Assembly (NCBI GenBank): GCA_964247055.1
Contig: OZ176056.1
Location: forward strand, 3,286,001 to 3,350,000
DNA from: Paragordius varius
Lineage: Eukaryota; Animalia; Nematomorpha
Reading direction: 5' to 3'
DNA: 64,000 nt
Shown here in pieces: positions 15,201 through 61,600 of the stretch. The notes under the pieces were generated by a model that ran no database searches, was not told the DNA's origin, and saw only the letters and a list, made by a program, of their open reading frames with translations. Within the stretch, counting starts at the first letter, position 1. Every line of letters begins with the position of its first letter. A program made the position numbers and the translations under genes.

Positions 15201-18200
15201 TTGTTTGTTTGTTTCATAATTCCAAGTTTCATTATGTAAAAAAACTATTTTTTAAACTTTTAAACAGTTTAAAAAATTGATATGTTAAATATCAACCAGT
15301 TTAGATCTTTTCAAACAAATTTTAATTTATCTTTGGTAAAAAATCTTTTAAACCTAAAAAATAAAATATGAATAAATTAAAAATATTTAAATGTTTCAAA
15401 AATATTATTATGAGGAGTGATAAATACTTTTGCATTCTGAAAAATAATTTTTAATCAAATATTTGAAATAGATTTGTAAAATCATATTTTTAAAAGGAAG
15501 GAATACGGTTTAGGTTTATTTTTAATGACTACAGAGTTATATTTGATTACCAGTTAATATAAAAATAATTCCTGAATCTCTAAATATAAAATGGTAGATT
15601 TTAGTCGATTATTGAAAAATTTTACTTAGAAATCATATTTATTTAAATATATCAAAAAATAATTTTAAGAATTGCAATTTTATGAGAAAAAAAATTAAAA
15701 AAAGTTAAAAAATAATTGGCGGCAAAAAAATTGCCATTAGGATTATTCTAGTTTTTATAATTTAATCAAACATATAAGTTTGGGTTAGAATCTTAAGGTT
15801 AATATCATTCCTATATCTAAAAAATCAGACTGAGGAATCAACAATTCAAAAAAAATATTCAATACTAATTTAACAAAAATAACTCAATAAATAAATATAC
15901 TTTGTTGTTGTAAAAAATTAATTTAAATTATAAAAAATAATTACAAGGATATTATATTAATACCACATGATTCATTTAATAAAAGTTTCAAATCAACATT
16001 TATGAAAAAAACGATAAAATATTAAACTTTTCATTTATTTTTACAATACAGGACCCCTGTAACTTACTTTAAATATTAAAATTTTCACTTTAAAATTTTT
16101 AAAAAAGATAATAATACCACATGATTAATTTAAAAGTTTCAAATCAACATTTATAAAAGTTTCAAATCAACATTTATAAAATATTGAAGAGATATATTCT
16201 GTTCATTTATTTTTCCAATACCCCCTTTGAAATTTTCACTTTAAAATTAAAAAATCCTTAAAATTTCTTATAAAAGATGAAAAAAGATAATTTTCCAATA
16301 TCGGAATCCTAACTCACTTTAAACTTTACAAAATGCCTTAAATTTCATATTCAGATATAAAAAAAATTATTTTCCAATACAGGATTCCTAATCACTTTAA
16401 AATTAAAAAATCCCTTAAATTTTATATCAAATATAAAAAAGATAATAGACTCCTATCTCACTTTAAAAATTTTAAAAAAATCCTTAAAATTTCTTATAAA
16501 AAATCAAAAAAAAAGATAATTTTCCAATACAAGACTCCTATCTCACTTTAAAAATTTTAAAAAAATCCTTAAAATTTTTTATAAAAAATGAAAAAAGAGA
16601 TAATTTACCAATATCGGAATCCTAACTCACTTTAAAACTTTAAAAATTAAAAAATCCTTAAAATTTCTTATAAAAAATGAAAAAAAAAGATAATTTTTCA
16701 ATACAGGACTCCTATCTCACCTTAAAATTTTTACAACAAAATATCTTTAAAATTTCTTTTAAAAATCATCTAAAATTTCTAAAAACCTTTAAAAATTTCA
16801 TATTTCTTATGAAAAATTATAAAAAAAAAGATAAAAAATTCTAATTCTACCTTATTTTACTGGCATATTCCAATTCCAATGCACAACGCTGTCGGACAAA
16901 ACTAGCGAACACGTCCAAAAAATCAATAGTTTTATTTGTGTAACATGCCAAATTATCATATTGATCCTATTATATTTTTGTTTAAAATGTATAAAAATAA
17001 ATTGTAAAAATTACTAAAGGATATATTAGATGTGCAAATATAGATTTTAAAGCATTTTAAATATATTTACTAAAATAGTTATTTTATTCTAAACATTGTA
17101 GAAAGCGAAAAAGTATGTAATTGATTGAAAATAAAGAATTTTTTTTGAATATCCGGTTAAAAAATTTGTTAAAAAAATGATAACAGACTTAAAAACTAAT
17201 ATTTTTCATATTGCGCGGATTTTTTTATCAGAGATTTTTAAATATATTTACTAAAATAAACATTGTAGAAAGCGAAAAGTAAGTAATTGATCGAAAAAAA
17301 GATTTTTTGAATGTTCCGTTAAAAAATGAAAAATTGTTTTAAAAAATAATTAGAACAAAACTTAAAAATTTTTTGATATTGCGCGGATTTTTTTATCAGA
17401 GATTTTGTTAAAAAAATTGAATTTTATTGTGTGTGCATATATTTTTAGTATTCAGAGATTCTTAAAATTTTTCATGTAACTTAAATTTTACTGGACAAAA
17501 AAACTTTTTTGCCAGTTTATATCGATCACTAACAGCTAAAATTTTAACAAAAACACCTGATTATTTAATTGCAGCCTTCATATTTTCAGACTGCAATCAA
17601 AAATCTTATCCTATATGAGTTATAAAGAAAAAAACTTTATTAAATTTAAGGCAAAAATATTTTGTAATCCTATTTATGCTAAAATTCATCATATTTTTGA
17701 GGCACATAAAGCAATTATATCAAAAGTTCAGACATTTTATACAAAACATTCATCCAATTAATTTTTATAGATTAACTAACATTAACCAGCAAGAATGAAA
17801 AATCAATACTGGTCCGTTATAACTGTTAAAAAGGCTATCATCATCAATTGCAAAAAGATAAAAAAAGGGATTTTTGATAAAAATATATATATTATTTTTT
17901 AATATATTTAAATTAATTTATTTTTAGGTATATATTTAAAAAAAGTTTGGTTTATTATAAAATAAAATTAGATAGAATTTTTGATGTTCCCTAAAACTAT
18001 ATGTATGATCATCTTTAAAATAAAACAAATTAAATTTTTAAAATAAAAAATAACTAAAATTAATTTGGAAACCATTGTCTGTTGTTTATAGTACAAAATA
18101 TTAAAAAGTATAATTTTTTTAAAAAATATTAAAATATATAAATATAGGAAAAAAAGTTTGATGATTTAAAAAATAATTACACTAAGTATAAATGACTTTG

Positions 18201-18811
18201 TTTTCTTATAATTCTCATTTTTATCATTTTTTATACTAAACTATAACTTTTGAATTTACCTGGATTATGTTTATTCATTCACCTGTGCATAAAAGTAATA
18301 TTTTATTTTTATTCGTAAAAAAATATGTGTGTGCAGGATTAGAGGAGCACAAAGGTAATTTTACAATCAATGTAAAATAAAAATATATTAAAATTAAAAA
18401 GTTCTAATAAAGGTGGATTAAATCAAATGTGATTTGATAATGTAAATTTGAAACATGAAATGATTATATTATGTTAACAAAGTTTTACAAGTAAAAAGAA
18501 TAAATTTAAATTTATAAAATCAAGGAAAGATTATTAACGTCATTGTGGAAAATATAAAGTTATAACAAGCGAGATTGCTTTATGTTTCAAAGTGTTATTT
18601 CATAAATAGAACGATGACAACAGCAGATTGATTTTTAGTATATTTGAATTATTTGCACCAAAACTCGAATTTGCCCAAAATAACGGTCATTTTTTTCAAA
18701 AACATAAAAAAATATATTTAATAAATAAAAATTTTTGTAACAGTTAATAAATATAAAAATGTTAATTAAAATAAATGAAATAAGTACCCATAGCTCTGTT
18801 CCCCAATTCAT
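93..18811 (-). CDS. Cip4: F-BAR/HR1 protein of the CIP4/FNBP1/TOCA-1 family, 3'-partial (SH3 exon(s) expected beyond the left edge)
   Basis: 15 GT-AG exons with consistent phases: 18788-18811 (MNWGTELW), 16851-16966 (DQYDNLACYT...ELEYASKIR), 13437-13493, 12520-12667 (LNESNDIAGQHEMIAE), 10027-10089, 9606-9710, 8968-9096, 8230-8376, 7654-7741 (DNKLVIEKFKSGF), 6826-6899, 6411-6528, 4042-4202, 2949-3046 (DDFSELPPNQRRKK), 1014-1146 (RDAMLRMREVYEQNPRMGDP, HR1), 93-273. Motifs match FNBP1/CIP4 as recalled. Confidence 0.95.
1212..1814. mobile_element. Foldback/MITE, TACCATTT family, variant B (unit TTGAACAGTTCAAGTTGGTCC)
   Basis: Left end TATCATTTACAGTTCAAA, right end GTGCAAATGGTA|TA; inverted arms of 21-bp tandem units around a ~400 bp AT-rich core; no ORF. 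Confidence 0.8.
1819..2140. mobile_element. Foldback/MITE, TACCATTT family, variant A (unit TTGAACAATTCAAATTCACCC)
   Basis: TACCATTTAC...GTAAATGCTA ends, inverted 21-bp tandem arms, family core (aaataaatta.gtgttttcg...ataggtaatttttaatctt). Confidence 0.85.
3163..3417. mobile_element. MITE family 2 (TA|TACGGACAAA...TTTGTCCGTA|TA)
   Basis: Terminal inverted repeats with TA flanks; second full copy at 13668-13903; fragments near 22890, 50295 and 62440-62520. Confidence 0.8.
3748..4023. mobile_element. TACCATTT family variant A, right end truncated
   Basis: TA|TACCATTTACAGTTCAAA, family core, partial inverted arm. Confidence 0.8.
4700..5140 (-). mobile_element. RTE-clade non-LTR retrotransposon RT remnant (inverted 5' segment)
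   Basis: Minus-strand translation with stops/frameshifts: EALRYNNI...IKTGLH*SSNLSSLLFIAILDYI...*KTALQTT/LTINLTKAKIMI, resembling the RTE RT GxxQGSxLSPLLF and LxINxxKTKxM motifs. Confidence 0.65.
5280..5750 (+). mobile_element. RTE-clade LINE 3' remnant
   Basis: GNLNISLSHRIRNGWLKF...KVKLYKVGIRPALAY...RIQYYGHMIR...R*SPHLTWLKLVNQDL. Confidence 0.8.
10480..12570. repeat. Degenerate ~170-190 bp tandem array containing copies of the Cip4 exon-4 3' end and donor site
   Basis: Motif aaatcaacctttttcctttgttcctttaagtttttaaccacttc recurs near 10645, 11135, 11318, 11485, 11655, 11825, 11970, 12155 and 12340 (deleted form); the real exon/donor is at 12518-12570. Confidence 0.85.
13668..13903. mobile_element. 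MITE family 2 copy
   Basis: TA|TACGGACGAAACG...TTTTGTCCGTA|TA; internally homologous to 3163-3417. Confidence 0.8.
14096..14399. mobile_element. TACCATTT family variant A, intact copy
   Basis: TA|TACCATTTAC...GTAAATGGTA|TA; 4 left and 3 right 21-bp units. Confidence 0.92.
16030..16830. repeat. Minisatellite, ~80-90 bp unit, about 7 copies
   Basis: Recurring gataattttccaatacaggactcctatctcactttaaaa...aaaatccttaaaatttcttataaaa, ending just inside the exon-2 donor of Cip4. Confidence 0.85.
17050..17410. repeat. ~190 bp tandem duplication
   Basis: tatatttactaaaata...aaacattgtagaaagcgaaaa...atattgcgcggattttttatcagagatttt occurs twice. Confidence 0.8.
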
Positions 18812-20730
18812 GATCGATCAATGTGTAAGCGCAAAACAGCTGGCATTAATATATTATGTAAAAAAATATGATTTTGTTTTATTGTGGAAAATACTTACCA
18901 ATGCACTTAAAACAATCTATAGATGTATATATATTAAATGATAATAACGATATAATAATTACTTAGCAAATAATGTTTGTAGTTTTACATAATCTTAAGA
19001 GTTTAATAACTATGATGTAAACAATTGCTTTGTGTGGTAGTTTAGTACCCCGTAGCTAAATCTTGTAAATTTAAAAGAGCTTCATTATCAAATCCTGAAA
19101 AATTACAGTTTAACTTCTCTGGATCATATCTAAACACATTGAAACGCAGCTCATTTTTATATCATATAAACTTAAAGTCTAATTTATACAAGGTGGTTAT
19201 TTTTTTTAACTATACTGCATTTGTATTCCGGTTGTACACTGTTGGGGGGCTGGGTAATTTGATGAAATATATATTCTGATCGTGCTTCCAAATTGCTTGA
19301 TTATAAACTAAATTTTTCTTAAAACTATTTTAAAATAAAAACAATGTATTCTTTCAAAAAAATATTGCCATAATATCCGACATATTAAAAATTAATGCAT
19401 ATACCGGTTTTTAAATTAACTAGACCATATAGGTGACCAAAAATTTGGAACTTTGGAAACTAACATCTCATTCGTATAAAAAGAATGTTTCTCTTTTTAT
19501 ATATAGTATATGATATATATTTTTTAATTAAAGCTCAGTTATTAAAATAATTTATTTGGATAATGTGCGCAAATTTTGCGTAGAAGTGTAAATATTTATC
19601 TTATAAAACTCGTAAAACCCGAAATAAAAGCACCATGTGAAACTTGATGCATTATCAAAGTATATATATTCCTGACTTTATTGTGGACAGTGTGTATATA
19701 TTTTATATCAATATTTTGGTGGGCTTTTATGGTATGATGAAGCACACGCTATAAATTGCATAAAAACATCCTAAAATATTTTAACTTTTCCTATTTAAAT
19801 AAATTTTTTATCACATTATCATTTAAACTTTTTTACTTAAAATTTTGATTTTATGTTAAAACACTGCATATAATTTTATGTAGACAATCGATTCTTTTTC
19901 CAAACATGAGTTGTAGAATGTTGAGCATCATAAAATAATATGTTTAAATAATATATTTAGTCTAACACAAATTTTGAGAGCCGAATTTTAAACGCAAAAA
20001 AACGGCGGGTCGCATAAAAATAGAGTGATTATTATATATTTAGTTAAAAAATACGAAAAAAATGGCCAATTAAAAAGCAACTACTATTACTTTTTATTTG
20101 ACTAATTTTTATTAGATGTTGCCACTTGAATGAGAAATAATTTTACAAAGAATTTGTAATCATGTTTTATTAAATGCAATTTGTATATTTAGTAATTTTT
20201 CAAATTCACGGGCAGCACATATCCGGACGCCTGTGAGTTGACCGCTATTTTTACCCATTTCCAGCAATCGTCGAAATTCATAAAACTCGGCTCAAATTTT
20301 TCTATAAATTAAAAATTAGCAAAATATACTCGGAAAATACTAATACTAAATTTAAAAATACTAAATTTGATGTCAAATTTAGCATACATTGTAAAATTCT
20401 TAATATACGAAATACTTGTCACGTTTACACGGATCCAAAAAAAGCTTTGAGCCTACATCCATTTCATATTATTATTATTTTCATATATATTTTAATTTTT
20501 TGGACTGAAGCATTTAGCTTTTACCAAAGTTAGTTTATTTAGCAAAATGGGAGATTTTGCCAACTGACACATATTCTAACAGAACATATGTATTTGTGCA
20601 GTATGTTAGCCATTTTAAATAAATCCAGAGAAAAAAATGGCGGCAAAGGTTTGCGATGAAGATTTTTTTACAATATAGATTTTTAACAAATAAAATAGCC
20701 TGCGCTTAGAACGTTAAATATAAATATATA

Positions 20731-21050
20731 TACCATTTACAATCAATTCACCCTTAAACAATTCAAATTCACCCTTGAACAATTTAAAGTCACCCTAGAA
20801 CAATTCAAATTCACCATCAAATAAATTATATGATTTTTAAGATTAAAAATTATCTACATTTTTATGTATTTTTAAAAAAATAATATTTGCTTAAAAATTT
20901 AAAAATACTGAAAAAATAATATACATGCCATAAAGATATATTTCATGTTATATGTTTTATTAGTTCGAAAATACATATTATTTTTAGAGTGAATTTAAAT
21001 TGTTAAAGAGCGAATTTGAATTGTTCGAGTGTAAATTTGTGTAAATGGTA
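20731..21050. mobile_element. TACCATTT family variant A copy (reverse orientation)
   Basis: TA|TACCATTTAC...GTAAATGGTA|TA, 21-bp arms, core reversed. Confidence 0.88.
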
Positions 21051-21256
21051 TATAATGGTGCGGGATAAAAAAATAAAAATCTATTGTGATTTTGTTCATT
21101 TATGGTTTAGGACCCCCCATAATATTGCTTCATTTACATAGCCCAATTTAAAGCTTCTGACATTTTAATTTTAACCATATATTATATCAAAAAAATAAAT
21201 TTATTTATTTTATTAAAGCGACAAGAAAAGTATTTGAGATAAAATGTTTAATATAT

Positions 21257-28489: not shown

Positions 28490-29589
28490 TATATATTAGA
28501 AATTTTAATTAAAAAGTGTGCGCTTAAGTCTCAAATTTTTGGCACCATCCTGAGATAAAAAAATGCAGATATTATGTAATAATATATGGAAATATATGGT
28601 AGATTTGACAAAAAATATTTTTGAAAAATCGATACCTAAAAAATAAAATTTTGAGCAATTTCATGAACTGTATATGTATATAAGGTATATTTGAGCTTGG
28701 TGGATACATTTAAAAAGCAGTTTACGATAAGGTTAAAACCTTCTATATATATATAGCACTGTCACAAAATCAGGAGTGACTAAAATCCAAATGGAATATT
28801 TTATAAATAAATGTAACAAGTTCTTATTCTTAGTTTTCGAATTTACGATTGATAAAGAAAGCCCTTTTAATGTAACTTTATAATAAATTGCTAGAATAGC
28901 GCATATTATGACACATATATTTGGGTTAAAGCTAAATCTTTATATCAATAAATGTATAGCTTTTATCAGTTTGCACAATCCTTATATATATATTCCGATA
29001 TAAAAATGTATGACTCTCATGGTGTGTTGGTTTTAAGGCTTACAATTGTTTTAATTAAGTTAGTTATATTTTTGTGGTGTGTGATCCATATCAAATGGCA
29101 AAATTGGGCAGTTTTTATAATAAATGTTTCGGTCAAAGCTAAATGCTTCATTCCATATCACCAAAATTTTCCATTCGGAAATAACTTCTGTTTAAAATTA
29201 ATATATTAAAATTATTTATCGCCCCTCGGAGTTTTGCCATTTTAAAAAGGACGAAATTCGGGAAGCTTGGGGCTTACATTTAAAAATTAAAATATTATAA
29301 ATATATAGCTTTTAAGTAGTGTATGATATATATTGGTGATATTTATTGAATGAAGCATTTAGCTTTTATCAAACAAATACTACAAAAAAGTTCGCATATT
29401 TCGCCCTTTTATATATAGAGCAGTTTTCACATAAGTGTATACTTTTTTCCACGCAAGAATCAAAAGCAAAAACATCATAAAAAATCTGATATTTCAGAAC
29501 ATATATTTATCTTCAGCATTACCCCGCGATCACCTTGAAGTTTTTAAAGTTTATTTTCATTGGTACATAACTCACTGTGATTATTTCAC

Positions 29590-32500
29590 ATGGTAAATTT
29601 TTGGTTGATAAAATTTATTAGTTTGGTTTAACGGATGTTACCATTACGGAACAAGACATAATACCATTTGATAAAGCTAAGCATATCCAATTTGTTGAAT
29701 CATTTGACACTGCTAAGAAAAATCTGGTATATATTTTTTTAAATTAAAGTTAAATGCCACCATAGATCACCTAAAATTGAGCGGCTTATATTGGTGTTGC
29801 AATTCTCTTGCTCTATTAAACGCGTTAGAAACATTCCTAAGCAAACCTGGGAAACGTGATGAACTCATAAATTTTATTAAATCATGTGAATGTGAGAATG
29901 GAGGTTATGCAGCCAGCGAAAATCATGATCCTCACATATTATACACTTTAAGTGCCATTCAAGTTTTATTTTTGTCAATAAAAATTATTATAAATTAATT
30001 ATTTTAACTACAAGCTAATTTTTTAAAAAATGAATAACCTAAATTTTTTAAATTTTAAATTGCCTATCTTTTTTACCCAAAAAATTCCGTTACATGTAGA
30101 AATAATTGTCCGACTAAATAACATAATTTTATAAAATTTTTATTTGTCTTCTAATTTATATTTTACTTTTAGAAGTTTTACCTTGTTTGTTTAGATTTGC
30201 ATTTTAATTGATGCTTTAGACATATTAAATGTCGATCGAATTGTCGCATACATCCTAAACTATTTAAATCCTGATGGCAGTTTTTGCGGCGATGACTGGG
30301 GTACTTATTTAATATCTATTTGGAAAAAGATATATTAATTTTTCAGGTTTTTCCATCAATCTTAATCTCAAAATATTTTTTAAAATACACTCTGTATTTT
30401 TCTCGGAAAGTTTTCAGGTTATAGAAATTTTGAAGAAAAAATAAAATTAAAATATAAAATGAAAAAAACAATAAGGGTAGAACAAAAAAACTACGTTTTT
30501 GACTAAATATTTTTTATTATCGGAACTTGAGATAAAAATTTATGATTTAATTCTTAACTGTAAAATTAATTTTTATTTAGAAGCATATTTAATAAATTAT
30601 AAATATATTTCATATGTAATTATAAACACCATCTTGTTTTTGTCTCGTTAGTCACTGTTCTTGTGTGGATTTAAAAACGTTTTATTTGAATATCGTAATA
30701 ATCAATTTTAATGTTGAAATCGCTAATTCAAATATACCTTTTAACAATTCAAATTCATCCTCGAACAATTTAAATTTACCCTAAAATAAATTATGTGTTT
30801 TTTTAAGATTACATATTACCTATATTTTTATATTTTTAAATAATGAAATTTAAATACTAAAATATAAAATAATCAAATAAGATGTATTTCATTCTAATAA
30901 TGAGTTTTATTAGTCACAAAAAACATAATATATTTATAAGGGAATTGTTCATGGGTAAATTTGAATTGTAAATGGTATGCATATAAATTTTGAAAATGAT
31001 TATTATTTTTTTGAGATTCATTTTTATTTTTTAACAGGTAAAAATTATCTTTTATTTTATATAAGAAATGGGAAGTTGTTAATTTCATTTACCATTTTTG
31101 AAAACTTTAAATCTTGAAATTTAAAATATTTAAATTATTTTATAAATGGTGAATATTAATACAATTAAAACGTTTTTCATATTATATATTAAAGTATAAT
31201 ATTTTTGAATTTTCACCAAAAAAGATGATGTCCAACATTTTTAAATTAATAATTTCATATATATACCATTTACAATTTAAATTCACCCTTGAATAATTCA
31301 AATATATCCTAAAAAAATTGTGTTTTCGGGCTAATATAACTCATCATTAATACGAAATATATTTTTATGACATAGTTTATTATATATTCAGTATTATATT
31401 AATTTAAAACAAAATTTCAATTTTTAAATATATAAAAAAATATAGATAATTTTCAACCAGAAAAAACAGATAATTTATTTTAGGGTGAATTTTAATAGTT
31501 TAAGGGTGATTTGAACTGTTCAAGGGTGAATTTGAAGTGTAAATGGTGTATATACAGGTATTTTTATAGTTGCCTATTTCACATAGTTGGACGATTTGCA
31601 ACACAGTAGTTTAAAAAATAACTAAATCATGAATAAACAATTATTTCCTTTCTTTTTTTCCATACTTTCCTGTGTTGCGAATTGCCACTATGTAAATTGT
31701 TGTTTCTAATATAGTTAAAAAAACTTTTATTTTAATATGGAAGGTAATGGTTAATTTTTGTAAAATTTAAAAAGTTTTCTAATAACTTTAATATTAAAAT
31801 CTTTAAAATTTGCTTTATTTTTAAGGTGAAATTGATACCCGATTTTCATTTTGTGGTCTTGCATGTTTATCACTTTTGGGTGAGTTGGATGATAGCTTAA
31901 CAACTCAACAACTCACATCCATAATAGGCTTTATATTGCGTTGCCAAAATTTTGATCAAGGATTCGGTAGTAAACCTGGGTCTGAATCTCACGCTGGTCA
32001 GGTTTAAGTTGGTTTTTTTTTCAAGTTTTTTTTGCAAATTTTATAAAACCTATAATAGCACAAAAAATGTTATATAAAAATATATTTAAACTTTACTTTT
32101 GTTAGAATATTACCGTTTCCTTTTTTTAAAGTTTTATTTTTATACAAACTCTGCTAAAAACACTAATCACAACATAATGTTATCATTTTTCTCTTTTTTG
32201 ATTGATAGATAAATAGGGTCCTACTTTCTGTTTGATTTATTTTATCATTTGATAAAATAAAACTTATGTAAAATTAACATAATTTAATTCTTAAAATGTA
32301 AAATGGACATCTGTTTTAGAGAATCTCACTTTTAAAATGCGCTTAATATAAATAGCACCTGTATGCATTTTTTTAAATTAAATAAATTATATCGTATTAT
32401 CTTATATTGGATAATAATCAAGTATGCCTATTTTTTTTGATAAATGCGCTTAAAACGGTTTTCCATGGAACTTAAAATTATTTTTGAGACAATTAAAAAT

Positions 32501-34751
32501 TGGTAAAGTTACTCTAAAATAAAAAATTGTCACAAAAACAAAATTAGAATCATAAGTTTTAAATAAAAAATTTTTTTTACTGAAAGGTTTATTGTTGTAT
32601 TGGAGCTCTTGCTATCGCTACGCAAAATGATGTCGCCACCTTTTGTAATTTGGATAAATTGGGTTGGTGGTTATGTGAAAGACAATTACCTTCGGGTGGA
32701 TTAAATGGTCGTTTTATATTTTAAATAAATTTATATTGCAAAGTAAACTTAACCATAATTTTATTCGTTTAATATGATTACATAATTATTTTTTAGAAAT
32801 ATTTTAAATATGTTTTGCAAAGTAAACAAAACCATATTTTTTATTCGTTCATGATTAAAAAATTGTTTTAAAATATCTTAATTTTATTTTTGCAAAGGAA
32901 ACAAAACCATATTTTTTATTCGTTCAATGTGATTACATAATTATATTTTAAAAATATTTTAAATTTATTTTGCAAACTAAAAAAACATATTTTTTTTGTT
33001 TAATATGATTACATAATCATTTTTGAAAATTTTAACTTATTTTACAAATTAAAGAAAACGCTATTTTAATTCGTATAATATTATTATATGTAACTTGTAT
33101 GATTGGTGTGGAGAGTATGTAGCAAATTTACATATCTATTCTTTATTTAGCAAAGTAAAACCATAGTTTATATAAAAAAACCGTATGTATTCTTTTTAAA
33201 AAATTTATTCTTGTTATATTTTAATTTAAATTTTATATTCATTCTATTATTTGAGAAAAATTCACTATTAATATATTAAAATTTTTTTATTTTGATCTTT
33301 TATTTTAGGTCGTCCTGAAAAATTGCCTGATGTATGTTATTCTTGGTGGGTTTTAGCCAGTTTAGCAATCATAGGAAAATTGGATTGGATAAATAAAGTA
33401 AAATTATTATATTTTTAATTTTTTAAAAAATAAATAAATTAAAATGCATTTATATGTATAATTTAAAATTAATTGTGTTGTAATTTAATAATAAAAAGTA
33501 ATTTATGAGATACACCTAAAATTAATTAAATATATAAAAATTATTAACCTGAGCAATTTTATTCGTATTTTTTATAAGGAATTTCGTTAATAGAAATTTT
33601 TTATAGTATTTACGGTTTTTATATTACAAATGTATTAAAATATATTGAGTAATTCTTTTATAATTTTATTTTTCATTTCTTTATTTTATTATTAAATTTT
33701 AGTTTATTTAATTAATTTATAAATAAATTTTAGAAAAAGTTGCAAGATTTTATATTATCTTGTCAGGATCCAGATAGCGGTGGATTTACTGATCGGCCTG
33801 GTGATGAGGTTTTATATTTTAAAAAATAATAATTTAAATTTTATTTTAATTTGTTTTGTTTAATAATTTATTTTAATTATTTTATAAGAAATTTTTTGGA
33901 ATACTACTGTAAAATCATTTTTTGTGCGTGCAAATTAATTTCAAACCCAATTTTTTAAAATTATTAAGACAAAACATAAAAACAAATATTGTTTTTTATA
34001 ATAAAGAAGGCCATACTTTTATAAAGTATTGATTTGCTTATATGACCTGAATGTTTACAAGTGTGAAATAGTTGTTGAATGTTTTAATTTAGAACTATCT
34101 ATTTTCGAAAAAATAATCTTGTTGTCTTTATAAAAAAGGATTTGTCCTACATTATTATATGATAAAATTGTTTTTTTTGTTGGAGAAATTAATTTTTCGA
34201 TCCATTTTATAATTATATAAAAAATTATATTTAATTGATTTTAACCGATTTCTTGCCCGTCTATACAAATTTTAAATGCAAATACATTAAAATATATCAA
34301 TTGATACAAAATTAATATATACAGGTTTTTTTTAGTTATCCGGGCGTTTTTTTATATTTTTACAACATTAGATTGAAAAAAACTTTTTGGGAGATTTTAT
34401 TTCTTGCTTAAAATTAAAACATTTTTGTTTAAGAGTTTATTTGTTTTTGTGCGAAAAGAATGAGGTTGACTGTTTTTTACCAACATTTATTAAATTCATC
34501 ATAATTTTATAAATTATGATAAATTTTCCATTTATTTTTCTTTAATTTAATTTATATAGCCAGACCCTTTTCACACCGTATTTGGTATATCAGGCTTATC
34601 ACTCTTAAGCTTTCCCAATGAAGATGACCATTTAATTGCAAAAGTTAATCCAATATACTGTATGCCAGAATCCATATTAACAAAACATTTTGAAAAGCTA
34701 AAAATTAAAAAATCCAACAAATTACATAATAGCAAAGGGGAGAATGTTTAA
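29590..34751 (+). CDS. RABGGTB: Rab geranylgeranyltransferase (type II) beta subunit, ~359 aa
   Basis: Exons 29590-29592 (ATG; placement least certain), 29622-29726, 29750-29962 ([13 protein letters not shown]), 30195-30300 ([10 protein letters not shown]), 31826-32001 (EIDTRFSFC...GSESHAGQ), 32587-32707 ([15 protein letters not shown]), 33309-33397 ([13 protein letters not shown]), 33734-33808, 34560-34751 ([15 protein letters not shown]). Confidence 0.97.
30735..30977. mobile_element. TACCATTT family variant A, short copy
   Basis: TATACCTTTTAACAATTCAAATTC...TTTGAATTGTAAATGGTA. Confidence 0.75.
31264..31548. mobile_element. TACCATTT family variant A copy
   Basis: TA|TACCATTTACAATTTAAATTCACCC...GGGTGAATTTGAAGTGTAAATGGTG. 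Confidence 0.85.
32735..33090. repeat. Minisatellite, ~80 bp unit, about 5 copies, in RABGGTB intron 6
   Basis: Recurring ttgcaaagtaaacaaaaccatattttttattcgtt..atgattacataat. Confidence 0.8.
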
Positions 34752-41000: not shown

Positions 41001-44000
41001 TTTTATTTATAAAAAAAACAATTGAATACATTAAAATTCAATTTTAATTGTTCAATCTATGAAATTAAAGTTTATGTTACTTATAAAAAAACATTCGTCT
41101 AAATTTATTTGATTAATAAAAAATATATTTAAATGTTTAAAAAAATTAAAATAAATTGAATTTGTAAAATTAATTTTTATTGTACGAATTTTTTATAAAA
41201 TAAAAATACCAATAGATAGGCCTAAAAATTTTGATTTGGTCCATATATTACCATTGATACAAATGCGCTTTTCTGTATTCTCTGCATAAAATGCAGAAAC
41301 TAAAAACAAAAAAATAGAAATTTATATAGAATTTTTTTTGAGATTTTTATATATTTAACCATTTTTTACACTAATTAAATTTTTACGGTTTTATCTTCTG
41401 TACATACTTAAAATTATTCTGAATTACACTGGTTTTTTAAAAGATGTTAAAAAATTATTAAAATGGCATTAATAAGCAGTTTAATGATAAAAAATTATTG
41501 CTTAGGAATTTTGGTTAAACAACAATCATGAGAAACGTAGGAAAAAATATCTCTATAACGCCATAACTTAAATTATATATACTTTATAAATGATTAAAAA
41601 ATGCCTATTTATATATTAAATTTAATTATTAAATTGTCCCAAACCTATATTGTTAACAAATATTCTAAAACTAAATTATTTGAAAAACAGGCAAAGTTGT
41701 CAAGGTTTGGAATTTTAAATTACAAAAAAAATGATTTACTAGGTGGATGATGGGAAACCTGCTCGGCAACAAAACTCAAATTACAATCTTGATTGGAATC
41801 TAACTATAAAATAACAACAAGAAAAATTAAAAAAATAGTAATTTTGAGAAAATTATTAAAACTGGCTTTTCGCATATGAAATATGTCGGCTATATTAATA
41901 ATATATATATATATATATATATATAAAGATAATCAACATTAAATTTTATGGTAAAGCGTTTACAGTTCAAATTCCCCCTTGAACAATTTAAAATCACACG
42001 CTAAAAATAAATTATGTGTTTTCGGGCTATAACTCATTATTAATATGAGTTATATTTTTATGGCATAAATTATTTTTTTAGTATTTTGTAAAAGAAATTT
42101 TATTTTTAAAAATATATAAAATATAGGTAATTTTTAATCTTAAAAAACATATAAAATATTTGGGGGTGAATTTGAATAGTTTAAGGGTAAAAATGGAGTT
42201 TGTTACAAAAGTAATAATAAAATCATTTCTTAACTTTAAAAAAAATTAAACTTTAGTTCAATATAATGACCCTTAACGTTAAGAATATTTTTTTAATGTT
42301 TAATCAGATTATTATTCCTATCATGGTTGAATGTTGAAAAAACTAGGAGAATTTAGCCAAGAATACAGAAAAATAAACTTAAAAAAATAAAAATATCATT
42401 AACATAAATTGAGAAAAAGACCCATTTGAGGCGAAAATTCCTTTCTTGTCAAATAAAGCGAATGATCATAAAATAGTAATGTTTGATACATGTGGAAAAC
42501 ACATTTTTTTGTAATATAAATAAATATAATTTCCCAATTACAATTTAAAACAACTTAAAAACTTTAATAACCATTTTTTTAGCAATTATGAAATTTTATC
42601 TATTTCGATGTAAATATTTTGTATTATCTGGAGATCAAAACCTTAAATGGTATTAGTTATAAAGAAACTAGGTTGAAACATGTTTGAATATCAATATTGC
42701 AACGCTCTTTTATTAAAAAAAATGACTTTTATATAATATAAACGCTTTCGACTTATATTTCAAATATCTTACTATATTAATAGTTTTAGAGCCATTTTGA
42801 ACAGATGATTTCCAATGACACATAAAGACTTCACCCAAAATTGGGTTAAATGGTTTCTTAGCTACGGATTGGCGTCCGCTATGGAAAGAACTGAGATAAT
42901 ACTTAACGACTTGTGTCATACGTTCGCGGGCTGTTTTATATTCCACTATGCTAAATAAATAGTAAACTCTAAAAAAAATTTAATTATAGAGCCGGAATAA
43001 TAATTATGTTTAAATGTTTTTTGAGATTAAGTGTTGAATGTTATTTGTTGGTGACATATACCATTTAGACTCTAAATTCACCCTAAAATAAATTATGTGT
43101 TTTTTGTTAAAATCACCTTTATTTATCAATATCTTTAAAATCAAAATTATACTGAAAAATTAACTATGCAAATATATATTCCATATAGATAATGAATTAT
43201 ATGAAAACGTTTATTTTTAGAGTTTGAAATTTTTGAAGAGTTAATTTAGATATCGAGGGTGGAATTGAATTGTTCAAAGGTGAATTTGAATTGAAATGGT
43301 ATATAATAGACTCCTATATTAAATATATATAATACTAATTAAGGATGAAAACACCCCCATTTGGAACTTGAACTTTATTTCAATATGGTGAAAACTCAAA
43401 GATTAAAAGACAAATATTTTTGTAAAGACATTTATATTAATTAAAACATTTATATTATTGATTGAATATATAACATTTATTATTGTATTTAGTTATAAGA
43501 AATAAGGTGTTTTACCAATCTAAATTTATTTTACATAACAATAAGTTAAAATATATGGCAAAAACGCCTATAAATGATTTGTAGAAATGGATTATTAATT
43601 TATTTAATAGATATCTAATTTTTGGTTATATTTGTATAACGGTTTTCAAGATAAAAAAAATTAAAAAAATATAAAATTGTGAAAATGATGTGTGGTAAAG
43701 ATATTTAAAACTAATGAAAAAAACAGTAAACATTATTGGAAAAAACTAGTGAAATACCCTTTATTAATGGATGGATTATTCAATTGTTTTAATATAATTG
43801 AGATAAGTATAATTAATTGTGTTATGGTTGCATATTAAATATTTTCGGAACGGTTAAGATTAGCATTTTGCTTTTCAATTTCATTAGTTTCACGTATAAA
43901 TCGTTTTGAACGATCTTCAATGTTAACCAATACTTCTGTTTTTGCTATGTGGTGACCTTAAAACAAATGTGTCAGCAAGTCCGGAATTAAATTTAGAGCA

Positions 44001-47000
44001 GTTTTTTGTTTTTCTGGTAATAATGATTGCTTGATTGCTTTTTTGAACAAATTAGTTATTTTAGTTGTCAATTGATAATCATCGCTTAATAGTTGATCAT
44101 TCATTTTGTTAATATACTGCTCGTTTGTTAAAATGACGGTGGAGTTTCCTTTGTCGGCAGGTAACATTATAATGTCAGGGTTATTAATTGCCTCTTTGAA
44201 GGCTTGGATTTCGTTTTTTGTATAATTTGCTTAGAGAAGCTTAGATTTTTTGATAATATGACTGACTGGTTTCCATTCGTATTATATCGGGCTTGCTATT
44301 GTGAAAGATTGCAATTTCCGTGATTATGGTTTCGAATATCAAGCCTTCAAATATGCTATTAATAACCCTGATATTATAATGCTACCTGTACACAAAGGAA
44401 ACTCCACCGTCATTTTAACAAACGAATAGTATATTAACAAAATGAATGATCAACTATTAAGCGATGATTATACAATCCATAAAATAGACCCGACAACTAG
44501 AATAACTAATTTGATTAAAAAAAGCAATCAAGCAATCATCATTACCAGAAAAACAAAAAACAGCAGCCACACCTAAATTTACTATCTCCCCGCGGATTTA
44601 GGGTCTACCTAAAGTTTATAAAGATGGAATACCATTCCATCCCATTATGAGTAATATCAACTCGCCGATGTATTTCTTTTCCAAACAACTGCTTAAGCAC
44701 CTAAACCATTTGCATACAGAACCACATCTTATGTCAAGAACAAAATTTTGTTAACAAAATAGAAGAGTTGAACATCAAAAATGCAGATCCACGTGTAAAG
44801 TTTGATGTACAGTCTCTCCTCACAAGATTTCCTAAAAACGAGGTTATTAACTTATTAAACAATATAACAAACAAAGGTTTGCACCCTGATATATTCCTAA
44901 ATTAGTTTTTTCATTTTACCAACCAATTTTACTTCCAAAATTACGGTACACCTATGGGATCAAGCATTTCCCCAATCCTTGCCGAACTTATATGGAAAAT
45001 TTTAAAGAAACAATCTTTAACTCCACTACCCTAGCTCTAAGTCTTTGGTTACGATATGCCGATGATAAGTATGCAAATTGCGAATAATATAAATAGTAAT
45101 ATAAAATTTTCCATGGAATTTAATAACATGTCTATCAGCTTCTTAGACACCCTCGTTATGAAAACAAAAAATAAAAAATTCGGACACAACATAAACTTTA
45201 CCTCAATGTTGACTCCCATCATCACCCTACCCAAAAATGATCAATTATACCATTTACAGCTCAAATTCACCCTTAAACAATTCAAATTCACTCTTGAACA
45301 ATTCAAATTCACCCTCGAACAATTCAAATTCACCCTCGAACAATTCAAATTCACCCCAAAAATAAATTATGTGTTTTCGAACTAATATAACTCATTATTA
45401 ATGAGAAATATATCTTTGTGGCATAGTTTATTATTTTTTCAGTATTATTTAATTTTAAAATAAAATTTTTATTTTATAAAAATATATAAAAATATTGGGT
45501 AATTTTTAATCTAAAAACATATATTTTATTTGAGGGTGATTTTGAATTGTTCACGGGTTAATTTGAATTGTTTAAGGGTTAATTTAAATTGTAAATGGTA
45601 TATCAAAACTCTAATTCACCAAGCTCAAGAAATATGCGAATCCACCTCACTGCGACCCGAAATCCACCACCTCAGACAATATTTTCAACAAAATGGCTAC
45701 CATCCCGAGTTTTTCAATAGAATCCACAGACGAAACACAGCTAAGCAACAATCAAATGATCAATTCGTTGCAACTGCCTCTCTACCCTTCATTAATAATG
45801 TAACCAGAAAAATCGGTCACCTATTAAACAAATTTAACATACGTACGTACAATATATAAAACAATGTCTAAACTTATCAATCACACAAAATATAAAGACT
45901 CTATCCCCCGCGAAAAAAGACCAGGTGTTTATAAAGTCACGTGCTCCTGTGATGGTGTTTATGTCGGAGAAACAGGTCGCACCATTGATCAAAGATTAAA
46001 AGAAAATAGACAATACATAGGCTCTAATAAATTTAATTCTGGACTTGCTGACATATTTGTTCTCAGGGTCACCACATAGCTAAAACACATAATCATTGGT
46101 TAACATTGAAGATCGTTCAAAACGATTTATACGTGAAGCTATTGAAATTGAAAAGCAAAATGCAAATCTTAACCGTGCCGAAGATATGGTGTTGTCGAAC
46201 ATTGGGAATTACAACCTTAAATAATATTTTATAATGCAACTATAACACAATTTATTCTTGTCTCAATTATAATAAAACAATTGTATAATCCATCCATCCA
46301 TTAATTAAGGGTATTTATAACTGGTTTTTTCCAATAATGTTTACTGTTTTTTTTCACTAGTTATAAATACCATTACCACACATCATTTTCACCATTTTAT
46401 ATTTTTTTAATTTCGTTTTAATTTTTAAAATATAACCGAAAATTAGATGTCTACTAAATAAATTAACTATTTATTTTTTAAAAATCAATTGTGCGCGTTT
46501 TTGCCATTTACCTTAACTATATATTTCGAACAACAATAAGTTATTATTAAAACCATATAGTAAGTAGTCTTTTTGTAAAAAATATTTGTCTTTTTTTAAC
46601 GTTTTGCCTTTATAATATAAATTTTATTTGGTTTTATAATTTTAAGTTGGAAAATCTCAAACCCGCAAAACGTGCTTGCATGAGCAAAAAAATCTGCAAA
46701 CATTTCTAACAAAGATCGGCGTTCCAATATAAACGTGGGCAGAGTTACTTTCGTTAAATCCATACCTATCCGGACTTGTGATAACAAATGTTTTATCATA
46801 CTCCCATATTGGCTTAAGTCTTCACCTGTATATAGGGCAGCAATTGGAAAATAAAAAAGTAAAAAGTATGGTAAGAATTAAAATTGTAACTATAAAGGAA
46901 TATAAAGAATTTTTCATACGTATACCATTTACAATTCAAATTCCCCCTTAAACAATTCAAATTACCCCTTAAAAAATTCAAATCACCCTTAAACAATTCA

Positions 47001-51700: not shown

Positions 51701-54700
51701 TTATTCAATAAATTAATACATTAATATTATTTATTTTAAAGTTTCTATATATTTTATTAATTCAACATACAACTTTTTAATAATATATTTTATTACAAAA
51801 ATTAAAAAAATATTTCGCATTAAACAAAAAATAATACAATAATTTAAAAATATTTATAAAAAAATTAAAATTAAGATTTATATATATATATTAAAATAAT
51901 CAGAATTTTATAAAAAAAACTATAATAAAAAGAAATTACCCTTGTAATTTGCAAAATGACTATTGAATGTTTAACACTGTCTATCAGAGCCTAAAAACAA
52001 AATAATAACAGAAAATTCCAAAAAATTTATAAATAAATTTAAATACAAATTTTTATACGCCTAATCCTAGAACTATATTAAAAATTAGGGATTAAAAGGT
52101 TTTTCCAAAAAAAAATATTATAACAGAAAATTACTTTTAATTTTTGACTTAAAAATTCTTATTTATTAAATTTATCTTATAATATTAATGTATTAAAATA
52201 TCTAAACGCCATCCTTTTCTAACGAGAATTTACATAATTTTTATAAAAATATAATTTAAATAAAATTACATGAGTAGATATTTTGATTTCAACGTATTTC
52301 TTATATATTTCATCATCTTCGTTCATTGCTTCGATTTTGGATTCCAATTTCTGGAAAATAAAATATTAACTTTTTAAAAAACGATAACACTAATCAACAA
52401 GGTTTTGCACCACCCCCTTATTTTTGCATTTTCTGATACCTAATGACATGGAAAGGCCAAAACAAAAAAGAAAATTGAGGCCACCAATAGGATTTTTCCA
52501 AAATTTAATTTTTAAATTTGTGTTTAATTCAAAAATAACAATCATTCCTCGTGTACATATGTTTAAATATTCAAACAAGCAAGTCGATACAAGTAATATT
52601 CCATGCATGGATAACAAATTCTAGGCATTAAATAAGATACTAAACAAGCTAAGAGCCAAAGTATTATAAATCTAAAAGGGGCTTATGTATAGTGTGATAG
52701 ATATGGGCGGCTGCACAAGCTCTGCATATCCCCCAAGAGATCCTATAATTATGCCAGATATGGCAAAGATAACAATAAGTAATCGTAAAGTGCGATAAGA
52801 GAGACTTGCAAGCAAAATCGTGGCAAATTGACATGTCAAATTAACCAATTTACAGAATAAAGTTAGTATATTCTACAATTAAAATGAATATAAATTAGGT
52901 AAATACAAACGGTCCAACCCCATAACAGTAAATTCTACTAAAAGTGGCTACACAACATCCATCTGAAATTCAAAATACAAAACAACCAATAATATCAAAA
53001 AAATAAGGTATATCCACTAGGTATAAATAAAGGATTTTTTATAAGAACCAACTCAAGAGAAAAAGTCTAATAAGTACTCGAAAGAACGAAAACTAACAAA
53101 AAAATATAGCCTATCTGAAAGCCGAAGGTTTAAACCATAGAATGTCTTTTTTAGTATTTTTTTGAAAAAATTTTATATGTGTTAAAAATTAACTTGAAAA
53201 AAAAAGACTAAATTTTGACGTTTAAGTGCGTACTATTTTTTTCTCTCTGATATATAAATGACATATTTATATTCAAAAGATAGAGTTTAAAACGCTTTAT
53301 TAAATGATATTAAGTTTATAATATAATAACATTTTATTATAAAGTTATATTTAATTTTCTCTCGATTTTCTCTTGTTTTTGAAAATTTGAAAAACCTATA
53401 AAATTTTAAAATTCTGATTGGCGGGATCAAAAATTTTTTCCGGTTTTAAAACACTAAAATTAGTCATAATTTAAAAAGTTTGAGTGGTGGTGCTTAAAAA
53501 TGTCCAAATTCGTTGACTAGTGTAATTAACATATTTTCATATAAAATATCAGTATATTTTAAGATTTATATTATTTTATTAAATATTATAGCTAAACAAA
53601 AAAATCAAAGAAAAGATGTATGAAAATCCATTATCTTCATTAATTTTGTCGATTAATTTTAAATATTTTATGATATTTATGGAGATAAGACTATATTTTT
53701 AGTGAGAAATTTATAAATATTATAACATTGGTAGATATAGTGTAACAGGGTTAATATCGTCAAAATTATTGAGAATTAGTTAACAATTATATATTGAAAC
53801 ATTTAAATAATCATATATGTAACAAAATTATGGAATTTAAGTTTTTCCCTAGGAGATTTAAATAAAATTCATAAACTTAATTTAAGATAATTTTATTTAG
53901 CTATTGACGCTTACATAAAATACAAGTACATTTAGATAAAGAAATTCTTTACACTAAATACTTAAATGCGCTGTTAAAAAATTTAATGACTCCGCAAAAA
54001 ACTTTTATACCTTAACTTGTGCAATTAATATTTGAAGGTAAGCGTCTGCTTCAGCGATTTTTGCATCAAATTTTTCATTTTGTTGCAAAGTAAATGTGTT
54101 GTTTTCTCCAACATTATCCTTCACAAAAAATGTGTTTTAAACATAAATACAGTACATAAAGTCAAAATTAAGAAAATAATAATTTGACATTAAGACCATC
54201 ATATCTTTTAAATAAATTATCAAAATAAGGATAGACATTTTAACTGGTAATATACTTATTCATAAATTTCACTGTTGGAATCATTAAAGTTATAAAGTTA
54301 TATAGAAACAGGGTCAAAAAAGTAAAGCTCTCTTGATAAATTTATTCTTGGTTTTTTTACGCGTTTGTAATAATCTTTAATTTATCTATTTATATTCTCC
54401 AGTTTGATTAAATTAGATTTAAACATCTTTATTTTTGGATAAATTTTATTAAGATTATTAGGAAATAATTATTTATGGTTAAAAAGATAAAAAATAACTA
54501 CTAAAATAGGGTACATATACCTCCTGATTGACATAACCACTTTTGTCATTTTCGCTTTTGGATTCATCTATATTCAAGAATTAATTTATGCAAAACAAAA
54601 TATATTATTCAAGAAATATTAAAAATATTATTTATTAAATTTAACCTTTGGATCTTTGCAAACATATAGCATATTCTAATGCTTTAACCCATTTTTCACG

Positions 54701-55065
54701 TTCAAGAATGTCACGAGCTAAACATAATACAAAATAATTAATGGAAAAAACATACATATGATTAAAAATTAACTCTTACCCTGGAAATGAAACTGTTTAG
54801 TATCACTCGTGATACTAAATCCACTATCATCCTCGTCATCAATACCAATCATAGCATTCTAATTTTTTATAAAACGAAAAAAAATTAACCTTCAAATGGA
54901 TAACACCTCTGCAAGAACCACGTTTCATTTTATCTCTAGACTTTAAAATTATATGTTAAGGTGTACCGTATAATATATAAGGAAACCATTCTTTGAATCC
55001 AAAACAAACCATCTGTATTGCCAACCATTAACTAAGTTTGTCCATTTACTTAAGGGACCTTCCAT
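35065..55065 (-). CDS. OSBPL9: Oxysterol-binding protein-related protein 9 (PH + ORD), ~787 aa
   Basis: 24 phase-consistent exons: 54967-55065 ([23 protein letters not shown]), 54890-54940, 54780-54858, 54646-54717, 54521-54567, 54011-54118 ([10 protein letters not shown]), 52270-52350, 51940-51990, 51459-51551, 50688-50780, 50118-50256, 49312-49479, 48621-48705, 48246-48343, 46663-46825 ([21 protein letters not shown]), 42773-42950 ([10 protein letters not shown]), 41740-41803 (EQVSHHPP), 41210-41299, 40874-40958, 39066-39162, 38536-38658, 36511-36602, 35660-35795, 35065-35136. Confidence 0.96.
36780..36996. mobile_element. MITE family 3, Tc1/mariner-like (TA|CAGTATGCATTTT...)
   Basis: TIR CAGTATGCATTTTTATGATTGCTTATTTCAC / GTGAAATAAGCAACCATTAAAATGCATACT with TA flanks; related copies ~31555-31710 and ~48415-48575. 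Confidence 0.78.
37208..38298. mobile_element. Foldback element, TACCATTT family, variant C (unit AACGTTTTCCCAGTCAATCGA)
   Basis: TA|TACCATTTCCCAGTCTAAAT...ATTTAGACTGGGAAATGGTA|TA; 10 left and 6 right 21-bp units in inverted orientation; ~690 bp core with no recognisable coding content. Confidence 0.92.
41957..42190. mobile_element. TACCATTT family variant A, eroded ends
   Basis: tttacagttcaaattcccccttgaac, family core, gggtgaatttgaatagtttaaggg. Confidence 0.7.
43059..43301. mobile_element. TACCATTT family variant A copy
   Basis: TA|TACCATTTAG...TTGAAATGGTA|TA. Confidence 0.82.
43593..44332 (-). mobile_element. Penelope-like element, inverted internally deleted copy
   Basis: [28 protein letters not shown]...; joined directly to the GIY-YIG tail and 3' UTR; reverse complement of 44333-44565 and 46021-46462. 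Confidence 0.88.
44333..46462 (+). mobile_element. Penelope-like retroelement (RT + GIY-YIG endonuclease), 5'-truncated and decayed
   Basis: [60 protein letters not shown], and [28 protein letters not shown]...REAIEI; stops, frameshifts and a MITE insertion. Confidence 0.93.
45248..45600. mobile_element. TACCATTT family variant A inserted into the Penelope ORF
   Basis: TA TSD at 45246-47 and 45601-02; removing the element plus one TA restores tca att atc aaa act (SIIKTLIH). Confidence 0.95.
46923..47331. mobile_element. TACCATTT family variant A copy, 8+3 units (reverse orientation)
   Basis: TA|TACCATTTAC...GTAAATGGTA|TA. Confidence 0.92.
47455..48040. repeat. ~210 bp degenerate tandem repeat, interrupted by a deleted TACCATTT copy (~47545-47656)
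   Basis: gtaaaagactaatatata..ttaggt.caaaaaa...aaatccgttatat...gttttgcagaaaaagacgaagtccaaaaattaatt repeated. Confidence 0.75.
48748..48792. repeat. (TA)n microsatellite (one of many, e.g. ~1183-1210, ~23318-23351, ~26071-26098)
   Basis: Direct reading. Confidence 0.95.
49086..49246. repeat. Near-perfect inverted repeat (~65 bp arms, 31 nt loop)
   Basis: 49086-49151 is the reverse complement of 49183-49246 apart from one substitution and a 2-nt A-run difference. Confidence 0.92.
52390..53160 (-). pseudogene. Decayed hydrophobic multi-TM reading frame; nad2-like NUMT candidate
   Basis: One frame of ~257 codons with 7 internal stops; MGL..LPNLYS, KL and [10 protein letters not shown] spaced like nad2; T- and G-rich strand. 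The R..LAYSS motif is not visible. Confidence 0.4.
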
Positions 55066-58635: not shown

Positions 58636-61600
58636 TTAGTCACCTGCTTTAGTGGGTTGTTCTAGAACTGCTTTACCTTCTGTGATATCATCATTATCAG
58701 CTGTGTTCTCTCTACATTCATCTTGAGATTCGGTAGTAGGGCGTTTTTTACATCGCTTGCAAACGCATTTAACGATACAAAAAAGTATTAAAATTTTAAC
58801 GATAATTAATCCTACAACTAAGACAATGATAATCGTTTTATGTTTTGCAAGATATGCCTTGGCTTTGGGACTAAGTAGCAAATTTGGAATTCCCTCCAAC
58901 ATTGTTTGATCGGTTTTATCTAACGAGGTGTCCGCATTTTTATAGAGCGTTAAATCTATTTGACAATCATTGATTTTAGTGTGGGAAAAGGGTGTTTTCC
59001 CACATTTTTGCACATATATATTGCTTTCGTCAGAGTTTGGTACAACTTGAGTATTATTAAAATCAGCGTTTTGTGAAGTGTTAAAATTATTTTTTTCTTC
59101 CGATTTTGGCGGTAATAGCAAGCAATATGGTTCAGTATCTGAAATATCATGGGCCTGGCAATACCATCTCGTATACCAAAGTGTAAATTTGGCAAAATTG
59201 CAATCACAACGCAGGTCATTATCTGTTAAGTCTATGTAAGTTAGTTGTGTGAAATTCCTAAATGAATTATCGCTAACACTTGCAATGTTATTGGAACTTA
59301 AATCGATAGTTATAAGTTTGAGCGGCAATTCATAATTTACGAAGGTGATGAATTGATTGAATGATAGATTGAGTTGTATTAGGTTTGGGAGATTGATAGT
59401 GGAAAACAATTTGGGGGGCAAATTGCGTAAAAAGTTTTCGCTTAAATCCAGCTTCAATAGTTTCGTGAATCCTAAAAAGATTTTGGAAGAAATATTGAGG
59501 CAGAGTATTGTGAAAAAATATTTTTTCATAAATCGATAAATTAAAAAGAGCGTTTCATCTCAAAAAAAATAAAGTCGTTTTTAACGACCATAAAAGATTT
59601 TATAAGATATCGGCATGTCTCCCTGAAATTGGTTAGTTATATTCTTACATAGGTATATCCATATTTAATTAATAGAATTTGATAATACAAATTTTTAAGG
59701 GTTATCTTATTTGTATAATAACATAAAAAAGAGATACGCCTTTTTCAGCCAAATCTGTTTTCATGGATTTTTTTGCAAAAACCGTTTTTGTGCTTATATA
59801 AAATTATTCTAGATAAATAATTCAAATGGGTTTACTGTTTAAAAACAATAACGGGTCGACTGCTTGTAAATACAGTACCTCATTGTCCTGGCAGTTATCA
59901 TTGATTATAAAATTAGCTGTTTAAAATGGATAACTTCAAAAATAAATTTTAACCGGCTCAAATTTAAAAAATGAAATTCGTAATTTATAAATGAAAATTT
60001 TATATACTTAGAGAGTCAAGATGGAAAAAAGGAAAGTCTAAATAGCAATCAATGGATTTAACCTAGAAAAAACCGAACCCTATTATTATTTCAAACACAG
60101 GATGATCATGTGTTTGAATGGGATTTTTAAAAGCCTACACAGTCACGTTCATGAATGAATTAATTAACCGAAAGCCTCATGAAAATGTATTTAAAATATG
60201 GATAAGAATTTCTGGATGAATATCTTATCAATACATTGATGAGAACTATTAACTATTTTAACAACTGAAACGATGGTTTACCCCGTCGCTATTTACGGAT
60301 TCGAATCATAGGTATGTAAATCTATCCACAAACGCGCATCAACTCATTTTAAATGTGGTGCTTCCGGATAATTAAACATTTCCTAAAAACCAAAAATTTT
60401 ATTTTACGATCTGGTGATCTAAACCAATTAAAAGGCCACATTTTTCGATCCGATTCCAAGGAAAAAAACATTGTCCTTGAGTTGCTTGATGGGTCTCGCA
60501 AAAGAGGCGGTCCCAAAAAGCGGTTTCTGGATATCATCAAATCAGTTAAAGCCTTACCCTCTCCCAAATAATTCAAAAGTCTCAAAATCGGCTGGAATGG
60601 AAAACGTTTATTAATGAGAATGCTAAGAGTCGCTACGCGACTAGCTTCTAAACAACAACACGTTAAAGTAGTATATGGTGATTTAATGCACTAATATACC
60701 ATGGATAATTTATGATAACTTATCAATCATTTTAACTTTACAATATGTGATAAATATATTACCTGCAAAATAATTTTCGGCCAAATCTTTTAACCGAACC
60801 GAATTTATTGTTAAACTTTGTAGGGTTGGTCCTACCTTTATAAACATTCTCGCAAATCCGTAATCAGGAATGGTCTTTGTCGAATTCTTACCACGTATAT
60901 CTCGATTAATGTATCCCTTGATTATGAAATGTTGAATATTTAATGTGCTAAACAAATCAACGCTATCAAAATCATCTGTGTACTCCAATTGAATAAGGCG
61001 TATCCGTTTTAGCTGAATATTAAATTTCAGGAACCCAGCGGCCAGCAGCCCTTGGAAATTAGTGTATGTACAAAATATTTCTTTCCCCCCATCCCTACAA
61101 TCACAGGGTGGGACAACTTGACACGTGTAAGTGTCACACTCAGAAATCATACTTTTTAACGTTGGTACCGTTGTAGACTTTGGTGTAGCAATTATGTTTG
61201 GAACAATTTGTTTGGTTTTTTTCATATTATTTCTATCATTAATATCAAAGAATTGATTTTGGGAACCTTTAATTTTAGGTATTGGCGTCACAGACGACGC
61301 TATTGATTTAGTACTGCTTTCATCTTTGGGTGGGAATATAAATTTTTGGAGTGATATATTTTCTTCATCCGTTACATCGTCAAGTTCATCATCTACGCCA
61401 CCGATTATTGCGTGTGGAGTCAACAAAAAATGGCAAAATGTTTGTTGTAAATCAGTTTGCATAAATTTGTTGGCAGGTATTTTAGGCATATATTCTTTGA
61501 GTGCTGAAAAAAATTTACGATTACCGCATGTACAACTCACCGGGTTCCCAGTCAAATTTAGGAAAAATAGGGTAGGAAGAGCCATAGTGACAACATCGGG

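Follow-up and report, generated by a model that had tools for sequence, protein, structure and literature searches.

Candidate 29- and 23-nucleotide spliceosomal introns at the 5' end of a hairworm RABGGTB gene

Background

Very short spliceosomal introns are documented in two animal groups. According to the accessible text of a 2026 survey of 51 animal genomes, introns below 30 nt occur in myxobolids and Dicyema only (PMC13644364). The myxobolid myxozoans (Henneguya salminicola, Thelohanellus kitauei, and Myxobolus spp.) are AT-rich parasites in which RNA-supported GT-AG introns occupy conserved positions, have splice signals cut to about GTa and AG with A residues before the AG, and set a genome-wide median length of 22-27 nt (PMC13644364, accessible text). 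In the dicyemids Dicyema sp. and D. japonicum, conserved exon-intron structures are combined with short introns of ~27 nt, and two thirds of all introns fall below 30 nt; confinement to 5' ends is not mentioned in the available part of that report (PMC6543705). Outside animals, two unicellular ciliates have exclusively tiny, AU-rich GU-AG introns with a fixed branch position, of 15-16 nt in Stentor (PMC9505925) and ~25 nt in Paramecium (PMC5014332), which the available portions of these papers attribute to a spliceosome with all snRNAs. Because the ciliate spliceosome removes such introns, a length of 23 nt is mechanically possible.

We analyzed a 64,000-nt stretch of Paragordius varius DNA (contig OZ176056.1, positions 3,286,001 to 3,350,000), hereafter called the window. 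Near its middle, a RABGGTB gene appears to open with two introns, at 29593-29621 (29 nt) and 29727-29749 (23 nt). These segments resemble myxobolid introns in their GT-AG ends, conserved positions, AT-rich parasitic host, and minimal signals, and they share small size and conserved gene structure with those of dicyemids and AU-rich composition with those of ciliates, although their branch position is only putative. They differ in being a minority: only 4 of the 15 introns annotated in the window are tiny, and the other 11 measure 62-1821 nt and are repeat-rich, unlike the 22-27 nt medians of myxobolids and dicyemids. The tiny introns have so far been seen only within 150 coding bases of the start, lie beside kilobase-sized, repeat-filled introns, probably belong to another phylum, and, unlike the RNA-supported myxobolid examples, are predicted from genomic sequence. 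The preliminary description of this DNA had named ciliates, nucleomorphs, and dicyemids as the main known cases and had held that such genomes generally lack abundant long introns. Its list needs the myxobolids added, and since these also have some introns longer than 100 nt in the accessible text of PMC13644364, coexistence of the two sizes was already known.

A literature search for tiny introns in hairworms returned nothing, and the word intron is absent from the main text of two hairworm genome preprints. The window is 19-35% GC and carries small, scattered exons; values of 20-30% fit the 26.9% given for Gordionus (10.1101/2023.06.26.546503), a match that is not diagnostic. A myxobolid or dicyemid origin of the DNA, which would make the tiny introns an ordinary example, is highly unlikely given the long, repeat-rich introns, even though the reduced splice signals resemble those of both groups.

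The RABGGTB gene model

RABGGTB encodes the beta subunit of Rab geranylgeranyltransferase and has an essential housekeeping role. The model on the forward strand joins nine exons into 359 codons with no internal stop, and all of its introns are GT-AG, with lengths from first to last of 29, 23, 232, 1525, 585, 601, 336, and 751 nt. The last six bear out the earlier statement that the same gene has 0.2-1.5 kb introns. Coding exon 1 is a lone ATG (29590-29592) lying directly 5' of intron 1, which is phase 0 and 17% GC. Exon 2 (29622-29726; 105 nt, 35 amino acids) aligns with the N-terminal 37 residues of homologs and is followed by intron 2, also phase 0 and 9% GC. Exon 3 (29750-29962; 71 amino acids) is separated from exon 4 (30195-30300), which is placed by homolog alignment and a spliced aligner, by the phase-0 intron 3 (29963-30194), whose position is common to many homologous loci. 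The phase-1 intron 4 (30301-31825) contains foldback or MITE-like repeats with 21-bp units. Exon 5 (31826-32001), placed by homolog alignment, found 20 Prenyltrans relatives. Exons 6 (32587-32707), 7 (33309-33397), 8 (33734-33808), and 9, which runs to the stop codon (34560-34751), follow introns 5 to 8, respectively. The donor of intron 6 (GTCGTT, within 32708-32715) is unusual, its sequence recurring at the start of exon 7, and the intron position is shared with the homologous locus L001.

Database searches were run exon by exon, and the joined model was assessed by local frame checks, alignment, and a protein tree. Exon 3 matches Pfam PF00432 (E = 4e-12) and RabGGTase beta in PDB (E = 2e-16); at E <= 0.001 its PDB matches are RabGGTase beta chains only, with no FTase or GGTase-I beta chain among them. 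In the Atlas, all clusters obtained are Prenyltrans. Compared with RABGGTB homologs (PF00432; PDB 1dce_B and 6o60_B), the host gene is 43-52% identical to four of them and its exon structure is conserved, except that it lacks the intron that many homologs carry at residue 156. It is fast-evolving, forming a long, unplaced branch in the protein tree (end branch 1.39). A pseudogene was rejected, as all nine exons are in frame.

In vertebrates, RABGGTB introns host SNORD45 snoRNAs. Introns of 23-29 nt are too small to hold a snoRNA of this type; neither tiny intron has an Rfam match, and an Rfam scan of the window, except 32801-33099, found no RNA family.

Evidence for the 23-nt intron

The second segment is almost certainly a real intron, with its splicing inferred from homology. 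If it is retained, translation reaches an in-frame TAA within the segment, at codon 43. Its removal yields a KKNL| junction that aligns with the DDY/DEY site of homologs. Among all stop-free GT/GC-AG pairs that could be spliced here, this removal gives the best homology score (682, versus 631 for the best rival pair and 589 for exon 3 alone), and the other pairs were rejected on this ground. A spliced aligner guided only by homologs picks 29727-29749 unaided when its minimum intron length is set to 15 or 20 nt, and it drops exon 2 when the minimum is at least 24 nt. The distance from a conserved His to the Leu of the LRxSG motif is 22 residues in the spliced window protein, as in 25 of 30 homologs; the other five have 21. 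The chance placement of both a GT and an AG exactly at the codon boundary fixed by homology has a joint frequency of 0.0014 in the window.

An assembly error could in principle mimic this pattern, either because longer introns were collapsed or because a run of T was miscounted, in which case the segment would be a coding insertion of 24 or 21 nt. The segment does contain a run of seven T, and one T more or two fewer would open a frame without a stop. The resulting insertion of 8 or 7 residues would nevertheless lengthen the His-Leu spacing to 30 or 29, outside the 21-22 seen in homologs, and it would have to fall exactly at an old intron site between a GT and an AG. Collapse would need to have spared both GT and AG four times in the window, in non-repetitive sequence. 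Four DNA sequencing runs from two samples contain 81-96% of the sampled words of 29400-30400, although at ~3 words per base such coverage is weak evidence against a local slip. Taken together, an error of either kind is extremely improbable. The preliminary description had regarded one additional T as grounds for abandoning the intron, and this does not follow: with the extra base, the conserved intron site would be occupied by a GT-AG segment of 24 nt, which can be taken as coding sequence only with an 8-residue insertion found in 0 of 30 homologs. The simpler consequence of a miscount would be an intron of 24 nt.

Evidence for the 29-nt intron

The first segment is probably also an intron, with good confidence that falls somewhat short of that for the second. 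Its retention leads to a stop at codon 14. Exon 2 lacks an in-frame Met, and the in-frame codon immediately before it is the acceptor's TAG; the start codon must therefore lie in an exon further upstream, as it does in homologs. A start of the gene without intron 1 was rejected for the same lack of Met.

The ATG exon could instead lie further upstream, leaving the 23-nt intron as the only tiny one and making intron 1 long. Homologs do carry introns of 50-1000 nt at this site, and ATG|GT also occurs at 29019, 28596, and 28484, which would give introns of, for example, 600, 1023, or 1135 nt. The donors at 28596 and 28484 score 0.6 and 1.4 bits, compared with 0.85 for the ATG at 29590, with a matrix from 14 introns that is too small to rank them. 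Against these candidates, the ATG|GT at 28484 is itself a repeat terminus and the donor at 29019 is poor (-3.3), ATG|GT stands 20-32 nt upstream of only 1.6% of AG sites in the window, and a second gene, the OSBPL9-like gene described below, also opens with two tiny introns. We regard the distant ATG as highly unlikely and retain the lone ATG at 29590-29592.

Conservation of the two intron positions

Homologous RABGGTB loci were fetched with fragments that matched exon 5 and by a metagenome scan, giving 84 loci; a mammal-like motif was sought in each with no positive, so none was treated as human. Two of them have the architecture of the window gene at ordinary intron lengths. L001 has a lone ATG exon followed by introns of 597 nt after the ATG and 531 nt after the DDY/DEY residue, and L002 has a lone ATG exon with introns of 213 and 87 nt at the same places. 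The alignment columns of these introns coincide with those of the two tiny segments of the window. An ATG|GT arrangement with a phase-0 intron directly after codon 1 is found in L001, L002, L051, and L020/L023, and a phase-0 acceptor matching that of intron 1 is also present in L060, L063, L069, and L082.

The position of intron 2, after residue 37 and in phase 0, also recurs among the loci. Besides L001 and L002, it is occupied in L006 (50 nt), L051 (65 nt), L060 (2920 nt), L063 (656 nt), L069 (1253 nt), and L082 (1093 nt). Applied to the full set of 84 loci, the spliced aligner places an intron here in eight loci and starts its match exactly at this column in eight more, and the latter fit the same exon start. 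The carriers of intron 2 belong to four separate branches of the tree, with 49-65% identity between branches, and because of this spread the positions are considered old. Since both sites coincide with intron positions in distant homologs and removal of the 23 nt outperforms every other pair, the spliceosomal reading of the preliminary description is supported. Very probably, then, 29593-29621 and 29727-29749 are genuine ultra-short spliceosomal introns that stand beside long ones in the same gene. They are best explained as old major-class introns reduced at their original sites to 29 and 23 nt.

Probable tiny introns in a second gene and their 5' bias

The intron sample comprises 15 introns in three annotated genes (RABGGTB, OSBPL9-like, and CIP4-like). 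The OSBPL9-like gene, on the reverse strand, likewise begins with two predicted phase-0 introns, of 26 nt (54941-54966; a stop at codon 39 if retained) and 31 nt (54859-54889; a stop at codon 67 if retained). Exon 1 is the start of a PH domain, and a 51-nt exon separates the two introns. Intron length in this gene rises steadily with distance from the ATG (26, 31, 62, 78, 402, and 1660 nt). In RABGGTB and the OSBPL9-like gene together, every intron below 32 nt, four in all, is found no more than 150 coding bases from the ATG, and the ten downstream introns are all at least 62 nt. A correlation between length and distance in these two genes is inflated by their own introns, and its p-value was not relied on.

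The CIP4-like gene (reverse strand; FCH domain) has a first coding intron of 1821 nt (16967-18787) located 24 nt after its ATG, so introns near the 5' end need not be small. A possible intron of ~60 nt is also visible in the 5' UTR of this gene near 18840-18898.

Tiny sizes may be tolerated only near the 5' end of the transcript, a weaker proposal than shrinkage in place, with downstream introns not falling below 60 nt and many of them perhaps swollen by small transposons. Two causes are each plausible without being favored. The cap-binding complex, which assists first-intron splicing (PMC7462061), could lower the size floor near the cap. Alternatively, deletion bias combined with exclusion of transposons near promoters could produce the same distribution with no special mechanism. 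Some other cause, or an effect of the small sample, is unlikely to account for it. Three genes are too few to tell cap-binding help from deletion bias.

We consider it possible, if rather doubtful, that hairworms are a third animal lineage with introns of 21-31 nt, allowed only near the 5' end because the size floor is set by distance from the cap. If true, a minimum size that depends on cap distance would reverse the usual rule, by which first introns are the longest (PMC2518113). Even as a local pattern, short first introns oppose that rule. Introns of 23 nt and 1.5 kb in one gene would also allow the size floor of a single spliceosome to be studied against position, which uniformly tiny-intron genomes cannot offer. 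Because aligners with a higher minimum intron length drop first exons, errors may arise in such genomes at the 5' ends of gene models and in gene-loss counts.

All four tiny introns have lengths that are not multiples of three, and each gives an early stop if kept. This arrangement would suit introns that are real and poorly spliced, with most transcripts retaining them and being destroyed, as a throttle on expression like that in microsporidia. Splicing of microsporidian short introns is put at ~25% (cited in the accessible text of PMC13644364). Among the RNA runs and contigs searched, none contained the 5' part of RABGGTB, although this carries little weight when the RNA assemblies are small. 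Production of this essential subunit nevertheless needs both introns removed, which makes such a throttle distinctly unlikely; were it to operate, it would alter splicing efficiency and leave the introns real.

Splice signals and predicted mechanism

Both introns show what is expected of the U2 type: GT and AG ends, restoration of a conserved reading frame, and the position and phase seen in homologs. The extended donor consensus with +5 G and a pyrimidine tract is lacking, and the tiny introns are too small for a tract. Across the 15 annotated introns of any size, +5 G occurs in one donor and the acceptors are TAG (nine), AAG (five), and CAG (one), so weak signals are common to short and long introns. 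Absence of the extended donor consensus is not disqualifying because myxozoans and Dicyema likewise lack it (PMC13644364, accessible text).

Two other intron classes were considered. The donors GTAAATTT and GTATATAT do not fit the U12 type, which was rejected. That class has the 5' consensus RTATCCTT and a TCCTTAAC-like branch site. A nonspliceosomal intron of the XBP1/HAC1 type would be cleaved at stem-loops and would not need GT and AG, and the GT-AG ends at apparently inherited spliceosomal positions argue against it.

A U2-type spliceosome would remove the tiny introns by intron definition, pairing their ends across the intron. The 5' signal needed may be little more than GTA, with no separate pyrimidine tract. 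Judged by eye, a candidate branch A stands at position 16 in intron 1 and at 16-17 in intron 2; in sequence of 9-17% GC such a match is not significant. The putative branch point would then be an A 6-13 nt before the AG, forming a lariat loop of ~16 nt. A loop of this size appears feasible because Stentor, in splicing its 15-16-nt introns, manages a smaller one of 10-11 nt (PMC9505925).

Repeats and other features of the window

In addition to the read runs above, run X5, labelled as another organism, contains half of the 29400-30400 words and could represent a related species or RNA. The repeat search, whose range ended at 32900, located at least two foldback or MITE-like elements with 21-bp arm units at 30710-31554 within RABGGTB intron 4, and the same family recurs at 20724-21054 and elsewhere. 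An inverted-repeat element of ~300 bp with 58-nt arms (71%) occupies 29100-29401 and ends ~190 nt upstream of the RABGGTB ATG.

Two regions of the OSBPL9-like introns contain further coding-like sequence. Broken reverse-transcriptase and GIY-YIG-like fragments, Penelope-type by eye, are present at 43900-46230, where two fragments gave no Pfam match. Hydrophobic open frames of higher GC at 52393-52960 (reverse strand, intron 6) gave no convincing Pfam match; they resemble a membrane-protein gene, or what is left of one, nested in the intron. A word search with RABGGTB exon 3 and a 498-aa LRR frame was blank, a result that is uninformative on longer kin. A large-exon LRR membrane-protein gene lies at 58636-62300 on the reverse strand, and its start likely needs an intron of 45-48 nt at 62277.
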